Part shown: one piece after another, positions 28,801 to 31,800 of the stretch
Numbering within the stretch: position 1 is the stretch's first letter
How the letters are laid out: the number at the start of each line of letters is the position of its first letter
Assembly: GCF_037042905.1 (NCBI RefSeq)
Contig: NC_087260.1
Coordinates: forward strand, 15,686,001 to 15,750,000
Direction of reading: 5' to 3'
Source: Lytechinus pictus
Taxonomy: Eukaryota
Length of the DNA: 64,000 bases
Made by a program: the position numbers and the translations under genes
The notes under the pieces: model-generated
Databases searched by the model: none
What the model saw: only the letters and a program-made list of their open reading frames with translations
Told to the model about the DNA's origin: nothing

Positions 28801-31800
28801 GTGTTTTACTCTTCTTGCTCTTAATTATAAGTCTGTGTTGTTTCAGAAAATGTAATATAATGATAAATATTTAAAAGTGTTTTTTTCATACATATACTGA
28901 TCTTGAAACATAAACCTACCCAGGACCCATAACAGTCATATAAAATATAATCCTGAAAAAAAAATGGTGACATGTCTTGCATATCATCATGAAGATCATT
29001 GATGTGTTTGTTATAGCAATCATTGAATGATGAAATGAAGAACATTAAAGACAAAACACGAGTAAACAAAACATACAATACAAGAATGATTCCGGAAACT
29101 TAATAATTAGCAAAATAAATATAGCAAAAATAATACATAAAAGAAACAAAAACATTATACCATCACTAGTAAGGCAGAACAAGCTAGTGAGCCCTTGACC
29201 ACATGACACAAGTCTTCCTTTGTTGGGTTCATACTTCTTTTGGATCCCATATCCGGGTCCAGGATTGTATTGGATTCCTTTCAATGAAGCATCCTTATCC
29301 CCAAGATACTCCGGTTTAGACCAAGAATATCCCCAGTCTAAACTGGTCACCATGTAAAGTCCTTTAGGTTTTTCCCCGGTCCCGTTCATACACGAAGGGG
29401 TAGAATGAATGCAGAAGGTGTGAATTAGAATCAACTTATTGGTCTCGTGTTCGATGGTTATTGTTCCAAGATTAGTTCCATCCGGGACCGTGTGGTAGTC
29501 GTCGAGTATGAACGCGGTCGGGCCCCAGTTGTCCCCGCCGTCGGTCGAGCGACGCATTGCGATAAACTTCGCCCCAGCATCGCCTCCACTGTACTTGCGT
29601 GCTTCGCTGAAAGCCAGCAGGTCTCCTGTCGGGACTTGAATGAGAAGAGGGATCCGAAACTCGGCCACCTCACCTGGTTCGTCCCTTTCCCATAATATTT
29701 TTTCTTCGATGACTTTGGGACTGAGCGAAGAAACTGACAATATGTAACACAACATCAGAATAACCGGCGAATTGTAGAAAAGTGCTGCCATATCTGCACA
29801 CCAGTGTTCGTCTGCTTCTCTGTGATGGTATACCCTCTGGTGTCACGCGCGTAAAACATTCCCCATAGACTTGTGTGTTAAAATGGCACTTTTGAAAAAT
29901 TCATAAAAAATAAATGTGAAATTAGAGGGTGGAATGTTTACTATCAATGGATAGGATATATATCTGACATTCCAAATCTGACCAGGAAAGGGTACCGTAG
30001 CCAGCTCATTTTAAAAATAAATCGCCATTTATGAAGATAACTATGAATCGATCGAATTCATCAACTGAAACAGTAAAATAGCCCTAATTATTCCGCCAGT
30101 CAAAAAATAGTTCCAAATCACTTATTTATCTTCCCAATTTGGGCGAAGTAAGTTCAGTAGTTACCATTTCTAGAATCAGTGTTAGATTTTGAATCACATT
30201 CATACATTTTTGTCAATCAGCAATATCAAATTGACAAAAATTCGAATGGGTTGGGTCGAACGAATATCTTTAGCCCTCCTGATGTAATTAGGCTCGTGGA
30301 ACCTATATTATGTGACTTATGTATTTTATTTTTTTGAATAGCTACTTTTCTATTCTTTTATATCTGTACACTCACACTAGCACAAAGAAATGCATTGAAA
30401 ATGCCTATTTTCTATGCAATGACCCATTTTAATGTGTTACCCATACATGTTATTTTCACTATATATATATGGATGTATACAAATCCTACCTGCATATAGC
30501 CCAACAGTGAATGCAATGACAATATAGGTCCCTATCCATTGTAATATTAAAGTGTATGTAAATTCTGTGTAGATATGAGGATACCAGAACTGTCCCAAAC
30601 ATAATTACCAAATATACATGAGATTGGATGAGGAAACAATAAAAGAATGAGATACTACTTTAGTATATTTGCATTTGACCTATTCAAAATCTTCCTAGGG
30701 CTGTTGCCTCTCAGATGTAAGAAGGAAGAGATACATAGAGAGAGAGAGAGAGAGAGAGAGAGAGAGAGAAAGAAAAATAATTTTATAGATGGCATGGCTT
30801 AATAAAGAGGGGGGGGGGGCTATACTAAGATTGCAGCACACAGCCACCCCCCCCCCCTCCCTCCTTAGTTGAGCACTATTAGATACCTTACCTTACTCTG
30901 TGCCCCTTTCTAAATACCTTCTTGAAGGCACCACTCTAGTTCTCTTTAGTAAAGTTCTCAAAGTTCTATCTCCTCTCTACCTACCCCCTTCCTAAGAACA
31001 ATTTTAACATGAGGAATTTCTAAAGGTCTTTCTAATGCTAAGTAGGTGATGTACACTAACACAAAACAATGATAAATCAGAACATAAAGAGGCCTTGACT
31101 CTATACATTGACCAATATACATACATTCCTAGGCTACACAGACCTACTAACTTTACCTGATGTAGCCCTGCTAGCCATTAAATCCATTTTTTTTTTGCAC
31201 CACTTGATGACTAAACATATTGATATCAGTGAGAAATTGTTTGCTACTGAAGAGTTTGGCCAAGTATTCCATCCACTACTAGGGATTTCCCATATTACTT
31301 ACAGGTGTCACGCGCGTAAAACATTCCCCATAGACTTGTGTGTTAAAATGGCACTTTTGAAAAATTCATAAAAAATAAATGTGAAATTAGAGGGTGGAAT
31401 GTTTACTATCAATGGATAGGATATATATCTGACATTCCAAATCTGACCAGGAAAGGGTACCGTAGCCAGCTCATTTTAAAAATAAATCGCCATTTATGAA
31501 GATAACTATGAATCGATCGAATTCATCAACTGAAACAGTAAAATAGCCCTAATTATTCCGCCAGTCAAAAAATAGTTCCAAATCACTTATTTATCTTCCC
31601 AATTTGGGCGAAGTAAGTTCAGTAGTTACCATTTCTAGAATCAGTGTTAGATTTTGAATCACATTCATACATTTTTGTCAATCAGCAATATCAAATTGAC
31701 AAAAATTCGAATGGGTTGGGTCGAACGAATATCTTTAGCCCTCCTGATGTAATTAGGCTCGTGGAACCCTCTGTGCATGTGATCTGCATGCAGTATATGG

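Follow-up and report, generated by a model that had tools for sequence, protein, structure and literature searches.

A 1930-bp element of Lytechinus pictus with identical 465-bp direct repeats is very probably a monomer of the published transposon family KolobokP-N2_LyPi

The window analyzed here is a stretch of 64,000 nucleotides of the Lytechinus pictus genome (assembly GCF_037042905.1, contig NC_087260.1, positions 15,686,001 to 15,750,000; G000:C16:15686001-15750000 in the contig numbering used below, in which the 812-Mb genome comprises 368 contigs). At positions 29839-31768 it carries an element of 1930 bp in which two 465-bp long terminal direct repeats (LTDRs) enclose a 1000-bp internal region (INT); in the description of genomic copies the LTDR is abbreviated A and the INT is abbreviated B. 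We conclude that this element is very probably a non-autonomous KolobokP DNA transposon monomer, and that its family is very probably the one published as KolobokP-N2_LyPi by Kojima and Bao (2022, Mob DNA 13:24; PMC9587614). The structure is real, and the family, published in 2022, is already known and not new. A preliminary description made by eye from the sequence had offered a non-autonomous KolobokP-like element and a new LTDR family as two readings; the first is borne out by the structure and by a match to the published consensus, and the second falls to the prior publication.

The left LTDR (29839-30303, + strand) and the right LTDR (31304-31768, + strand) show no differences over their 465 bp in a pairwise comparison, as the eye had suggested, and the identity ends exactly at both borders of both copies, without one base of extension. 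The spacer between them (30304-31303) is exactly 1000 bp. A chance origin for a perfect repeat of this length is excluded, since the identical repeat is present at at least 38 further places in the genome. The outer flanks read CCCTCT|GGTGTC... on the left and ...GGAACC|CTCT|GTGC on the right, and the CTCT that adjoins both outer repeat ends (29835-29838 and 31769-31772) is thus a true 4-bp direct duplication. Each LTDR starts with GG and ends with CC (5′ end GGTGTCACGCGC, 3′ end GCTCGTGGAACC) and has imperfectly inverted ends: in the left LTDR the 5′ terminal inverted repeat GGTGTCACGCGCGTAA (29839-29854, + strand) agrees with the reverse complement of the 3′ terminal inverted repeat TTAGGCTCGTGGAACC (30288-30303, + strand) at 9 of the first 12 positions, and at 12 of 16 when the comparison is extended. 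The inner junctions, read at both joints, are GGAACC|TATA on the left and TACA|GGTG on the right. The flanking duplication, the inverted ends of each repeat and the inner tetranucleotides are all as first described.

The INT (+ strand) runs from TATA to TACA and is non-coding. The longest open reading frame (ORF) wholly inside the element has 87 aa or less, and a 97-aa ORF with a GTG start leaves the element into the flank. The G+C content is 35% in the LTDR and 36% in the spacer, compared with 37% in the whole window. An (AG)18 microsatellite lies in the INT at 30737-30773. Just 3′ of it, at about 30809-30858, about 11 G residues in a row and about 10-12 C residues in a row lie 27 bp apart; this feature is also printed in the N1 and N2 consensuses (Kojima and Bao 2022). 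Variation in tract length probably makes up much of the 1-3% divergence among INT copies.

KolobokP elements, which are DNA transposons of the Kolobok superfamily with paired ends, have the plan LTDR-INT-LTDR (Kojima and Bao 2022). Their LTDRs measure either about 450 bp or about 660 bp, and every LTDR has its own perfect or imperfect inverted ends of 11-18 bp and the termini 5′-RR..YY-3′. Their duplications are 3-5 bp long with no strong target preference, and Table S1 of that paper gives 4 bp for most KolobokP families and for most of those with ~450-bp LTDRs; the non-autonomous families listed there are 1.4-3.7 kb long. Solo LTDRs are abundant, (LTDR-INT)n-LTDR multimers occur, forms of the type LTDR-(INT)n-LTDR carry a micro-deletion of 3-4 bp at the INT-INT joints, and the architecture is a stable trait of the lineage over seven animal phyla (Kojima and Bao 2022). 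The L. pictus element shares this plan, with its identical 465-bp direct repeats round a 1000-bp INT and its GG...CC termini complementary at 9/12 and 12/16 positions. Its duplications are of the non-specific 3-5 bp kind (CTCT here, and CCCA, TACA and TCGA at other loci), and solo, multimeric and INT-INT forms are all found in the genome, the INT-INT joint lacking 4 bp. The target, which had been called atypical in not being TTAA, is of the usual kind for KolobokP.

The published entry for KolobokP-N2_LyPi, a family of L. pictus, gives a length of 1904 bp, LTDRs of 465/464 bp, a 4-bp duplication and inverted ends of 16 bp, with copy numbers of 313 for the LTDR and 156 for the INT (PMC9587614, Table S1). 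The window element resembles it in the 465-bp LTDR, the 4-bp duplication, the inverted ends of about 16 bp and the non-coding INT of about 1 kb, and here too solo LTDRs and multimers occur. The printed consensus (Data S1) was compared over selected stretches and by eye, from the machine-read text of a PDF. A 46-nt stretch of its LTDR is matched at 46/46 positions in both window repeats, the last 35 nt of its INT agree with 31269-31303 at 33 of 35 positions, and the remainder, judged by eye, is recognizably A plus B. The printed consensus starts with gggtgcacgcgcg and ends in ...gtgggacc, whereas the window copy starts with ggtgtcacgcgcg and ends in ...gtggaacc; both LTDR end variants occur in the L. 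pictus genome, and some of the differences between consensus and copy may be errors in reading the PDF.

Solo repeats, tandem repeats and copies with the same spacer, for which a genome-wide search had been proposed, are all present. The LTDR yielded 1828 first-look candidates in the genome; 40 were scored and all are 100% identical, 32 of them on contig C110, where they recur with a period of 1464 bp. This contig is an array of at least 35 units, and the array end finishes on a complete A. The INT yielded 1244 candidates with identities up to 99%, including at least 53 full or partial copies at 96-99%, and the INT of the window has no identical twin among them (best 99%). The first 24 bases of A have 1024 exact matches in the genome, against 0 for a reversed control, and an LTDR|INT-type junction pattern has 869 matches at up to 3 mismatches. 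Among the first 100 of the 24-mer places listed are 21 that are isolated, 7 pairs spaced by 1439-1466 bp, 1 pair at 2907 bp and 5 multimers. The pairs spaced by 1439-1466 bp are monomers like the window copy. One multimer spans 37 kb on C1, and another spans more than 60 kb on C2 and mixes periods of 1459 bp (A-B) and 2447 bp (A-B-B).

We mapped A and B on fetched loci and found a solo A on C21 with the duplication CCCA, an A-B-B-A form on C5 with the duplication TACA, and an A-B-A-B-A form on C16, 7.8 Mb from the window, with the duplication TCGA; on C9 an A is followed by a truncated B, with no duplication. With CTCT in the window there are 4-bp duplications at four independent insertions. 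In this family, insertion into unrelated targets produces a 4-bp duplication, and the inserted unit may be a solo LTDR, a monomer or a multimer that has whole LTDRs at both ends. The A|B and B|A joints are the same in all mapped loci as in the window, and TATA and TACA are the conserved INT ends in every copy mapped, so they are not the decayed second target duplication that had been considered for them. The INT-INT joint reads ACTTATATTATG (...ATATTACTTATATTATGTG) and is 4 bp shorter than two abutted INT ends would be, which means that a single TACA/TATA tetranucleotide is kept; the exact B|B 24-mer occurs twice in the genome. Arrays made of INT only are found at C14:26430332-26434041 and 26453650-26460690, where neighbors overlap by 3-4 bp in the alignment, and contig C161 mixes A-B and B-B periods; these INT-only and mixed arrays represent large-scale loss of LTDRs. 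A plain 1465-bp satellite was considered and rejected, as the arrays have a whole LTDR at their start and at their end, with 4-bp duplications.

The identity of A across at least 38 other loci shows that the family is very young or strongly homogenized. The absence of differences between the two window repeats had been taken as a sign of a very recent event. LTDR-LTDR identity does not date the insertion, because the repeats, unlike the LTRs (long terminal repeats) of retroelements, are not regenerated when the element inserts.

Autonomous partners that combine a DDD/E transposase with a His-Me nuclease had also been proposed, and a related element of this kind was found. The domain PF05551, which stands for the zinc-binding loop found in homing endonucleases of the I-PpoI type, has 106 matches in the genome and 0 in 14 control genomes; most of them belong to arrays that repeat every 4461 bp or about every 4348 bp. 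The LTDR of the 4461-bp family is collinear with A end to end and shares about 80% identity with it over positions 11-460. One locus on C17 (L054) holds an autonomous element of 4.9 kb, with 467-bp LTDRs that are 99.8% alike and lie 4449 bp apart. An ORF of 685 aa on its direct strand matches the full PF20700 profile (E 3.8e-49) and has a visible CxxH, Cys/His cluster and CESMN motif; an ORF of 146 aa on the opposite strand matches PF05551 (E 2.5e-11) and PF13392 (HNH_3; E 2.2e-6). At least 60 genomic copies keep the transposase frame open, with 99% protein identity. The L054 element and KolobokP-1_LyPi share with the window element the LTDR-INT-LTDR plan, a collinear LTDR of 466-467 bp and homologous INT ends. 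L054 differs in that it encodes a transposase of 685 aa and a 146-aa His-Me nuclease, whereas the window element codes for nothing, and in its LTDR, which is only about 80% identical and has other terminal bases.

PF20700 is called "Mutator-like" in Pfam, and a literature search on it returned nothing that links this domain to Kolobok; the assignment to Kolobok comes from the alignment in the supplement of PMC9587614, and not from a tree. In rows of this alignment, long stretches of the L054 transposase and nuclease are about 85% identical by eye. The nuclease match is to the row labelled KolobokP_1_LyPi and has the catalytic residues SH...H...N in common, and the transposase match takes in the CxxH, the Cys/His cluster and CESMN. 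From its position just before the KolobokP-1_PaMi row, the transposase row appears to be the same family. A comparison of the 146-aa nuclease with solved structures gave spurious antibody and hydrolase matches only, so that I-PpoI is not reached from the sequence alone.

In the autonomous INT, the first ~540 bp, which lie upstream of the transposase ORF, align collinearly with B 7-516 (60% identity), and B and the autonomous INT resemble each other at their 3′ ends. From this collinearity and these similar ends, B looks like an autonomous INT that has lost its coding middle, that is, an internal-deletion derivative. A likely mobilizing partner would have LTDR ends of the form GGTGTCACGCGC / GGCTCGTGG(A/G)ACC, and a candidate for a coding element with N2-like ends lies on C7. 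There a nuclease match (C7:10449318-10449497) is 3.3-3.5 kb from an LTDR|INT junction (C7:10452770-10452801) with an N2-type LTDR end, GGCTCGTGGGACC, and the two are oriented and spaced as in L054. Judged from these coordinates, C7:10449318-10452801 may be the mobilizing partner of the N2 family and a better candidate for it than L054.

Units of the 4461-bp autonomous family fill the unplaced contigs C109 (82 kb), C157, C174, C200, C214, C219, C273 and C361, and are also present at C8:21258305-21298404 (sample locus L046), with intact frames for the 146-aa nuclease. Amplified in tandem, this coding family is very young and possibly active. A second nuclease-bearing array, at C5:35922827-35969261 (L047), repeats about every 4348 bp and its frame is 143 aa long; its sequence has no similarity to the window LTDR or INT; it is presumably another KolobokP family. 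At L054, identical 126-bp stretches (1162-1287 and 6201-6326) stand in place of a 4-bp duplication. An INT-like TGTA follows the right LTDR there, and the 126-bp stretch ends in ...ATA before GG, like an INT end, so that the flanking stretch looks like a mini-INT of about 129 bp within a multimer.

The monomer in the window could also have been built in two steps: a solo LTDR would have inserted first at CTCT, and an extrachromosomal LTDR-INT circle or an unequal exchange would later have rebuilt the monomer with the duplication unchanged. The circle route at a resident LTDR is one that Kojima and Bao (2022) proposed (Fig. 5b1), and solo LTDRs are abundant (21/34 loci among the first 24-mer places listed). 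The two LTDRs also show no differences from each other or from many other copies, while no copy identical to the INT was found (best 99%). A circle junction was not seen, in work that did not look for one. Both routes yield the same duplication and are inseparable at the locus, and nothing there sets the two-step route apart from transposition of a whole monomer; TATA and TACA, moreover, are family-wide INT ends and not locus-specific scars. We regard a rebuilt monomer as unlikely. Far less likely still is that the second repeat is an artefact of assembly and that the true allele has a solo LTDR or another number of units. Identical 465-bp repeats are indeed hard to assemble. Short-read contigs from two runs (X15 and X16) contain the right LTDR-flank junction, and such contigs break inside the element, with none that spans it and with a word depth far higher over the element than over its flanks; the presence of two LTDRs here is therefore neither supported nor contradicted by them. 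The empty-site joint (TACCCTCTGTGCATG) was not seen in the short-read contigs of four runs, which is no evidence that an empty allele is absent. On the other hand, many independent loci show the LTDR-INT-LTDR structure with clean 4-bp duplications, the published family is built in the same way, and the INT of the window is unique in sequence and joins both LTDRs seamlessly.

That the element is a non-autonomous LTR retrotransposon, with 465-bp LTRs, a 4-bp duplication and arrays formed by LTR-LTR recombination, has next to no probability. Terminal-repeat retrotransposons in miniature (TRIMs) and large retrotransposon derivatives (LARDs) do resemble it: they too have terminal repeats in direct orientation, short duplications, solo copies of the repeat and multimers in tandem, and TRIMs are likewise known to form arrays of the type (repeat-core)n-repeat (PMC9587614). 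However, the preliminary description had found neither TG..CA ends nor a primer-binding site nor an ORF, and our reading agrees: the ends are GG..CC, each repeat has its own inverted ends of 12-16 bp, the TATATTATGTGAC that follows the left repeat is not a tRNA primer site, and no polypurine tract precedes the right repeat, where the sequence is CATATTACTTACA. There are also core-core joints that lack 4 bp, and arrays made of cores alone. The preliminary description had also considered that the repeat might be the LTR of a gag-pol retroelement elsewhere in the genome, but no gag-pol partner with the same repeat was found, in work that did not include an exhaustive search for reverse transcriptase. 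The homologous repeat instead bounds an element with a DDE transposase and a His-Me nuclease and no reverse transcriptase; the coding relatives are DNA transposons.

Some points weigh against the assignment of the window element to KolobokP-N2_LyPi as a monomer moved by such relatives. The comparison with the consensus depends on a machine-read PDF, including the printed first bases gggtgcacgcgcg, and another 46-nt stretch of the consensus has no match in the window at up to 3 mismatches, the failure being due to a 1-base indel. An exact search for the element termini in the supplement of PMC9587614 gave no matches, and the published length is 1904 bp vs 1930 bp here. The closest coding element read, L054, has the LTDR ends GGTACCACAGGCC vs GGTGTCACGCGCG in the window; because its family has these different termini, it may not be the source of the enzyme for the window element. 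The better partner candidate, C7:10449318-10452801, is known by coordinates alone, and there is no long read that confirms both LTDRs at this locus.

We suggest the following course of events for this KolobokP family. The element encodes nothing and would depend for its mobilization on a DDD/E transposase that an autonomous KolobokP of the same genome supplies in trans. The transposase would recognize the short inverted repeats that terminate each LTDR and pair one left with one right end. If the outermost pair is used, the whole LTDR-INT-LTDR unit would move, and a cut with a 4-bp stagger at a non-specific target would produce the CTCT duplication; if both ends of a single LTDR are used, a solo LTDR would move or be excised. 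INT-INT joints might form in place when an LTDR is excised and one tetranucleotide stays behind, or by unequal crossover between LTDRs, and the multimers and arrays might likewise grow on site by unequal LTDR crossover, possibly triggered by the element-encoded His-Me nuclease. The acting transposase, movement by cut-and-paste or through a circle, and any role of the nuclease are inferences that follow Kojima and Bao (2022).

The LTDR contains a subterminal block with the core TTCCCCATAGAC...TGTGTTAAAA, about 22-50 bp inside its 5′ end (29859-29913 in the left LTDR, + strand, with a second copy at 31324-31378 in the right LTDR). It is the sole part of the LTDR that aligns with three LTDR families of the genome that are otherwise unalignable, and it stands at the same offset in them. 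Copies found by sequence alignment are at L048:4293-4346(-), L050:4307-4360(-), L052:4278-4331(-), L056:1466-1519(+) and L054:1306-1360(+), and a similar "ttcccatagac" block can be made out by eye at the corresponding position of the sea-star KolobokP consensuses in print (PMC9587614). It is conceivable, if rather doubtful, that the block is the homing site of the KolobokP His-Me nuclease and that cleavage there drives the formation of the very large arrays, which take up more than 60 kb on C2 and entire contigs of 80 kb. A binding site of the transposase or a promoter is an equally possible identity for the block. Were it the homing site, the "induced unequal crossover" model would be directly testable, and a transposon family would be shown to generate satellite-scale DNA.

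The preliminary description had compared the element to bacterial composite transposons, and there is a likeness to these insertion sequence (IS)-cargo-IS arrangements, such as the IS26 pseudo-compound transposons, in that self-mobile units bracket a middle segment and that the whole or a single unit can move. In contrast to them, the flanking units of the window element have no transposase gene, and the autonomous relatives encode the enzyme in the middle; the host is a eukaryote, and in KolobokP the arrangement is a stable lineage trait and not an opportunistic assembly. A composite transposon of the bacterial type was rejected, as the LTDR has no ORF of note and the transposase of the relative lies in the INT. 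We also note two 57-nt direct copies at 28058-28180 of the window, ~1.7 kb upstream of the element and apparently unrelated to it; they are 82% identical, lie 66 bp apart and each end in G10.

The rare architecture of this element was correctly recognized by a reader working by eye. The genome of L. pictus is of value for the study of KolobokP in having very young copies, with LTDRs identical at dozens of loci, more than 60 intact transposase and nuclease genes, and arrays tens of kb long of both coding and non-coding KolobokP units. The conserved subterminal block, considered along with how large and how fresh the arrays are, could help to locate the target of the nuclease. How the transposase chooses its ends, whether circles are involved and where the His-Me nuclease cuts are three questions that the original KolobokP paper left open (Kojima and Bao 2022), and for all of them the L. 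pictus genome is a good system.

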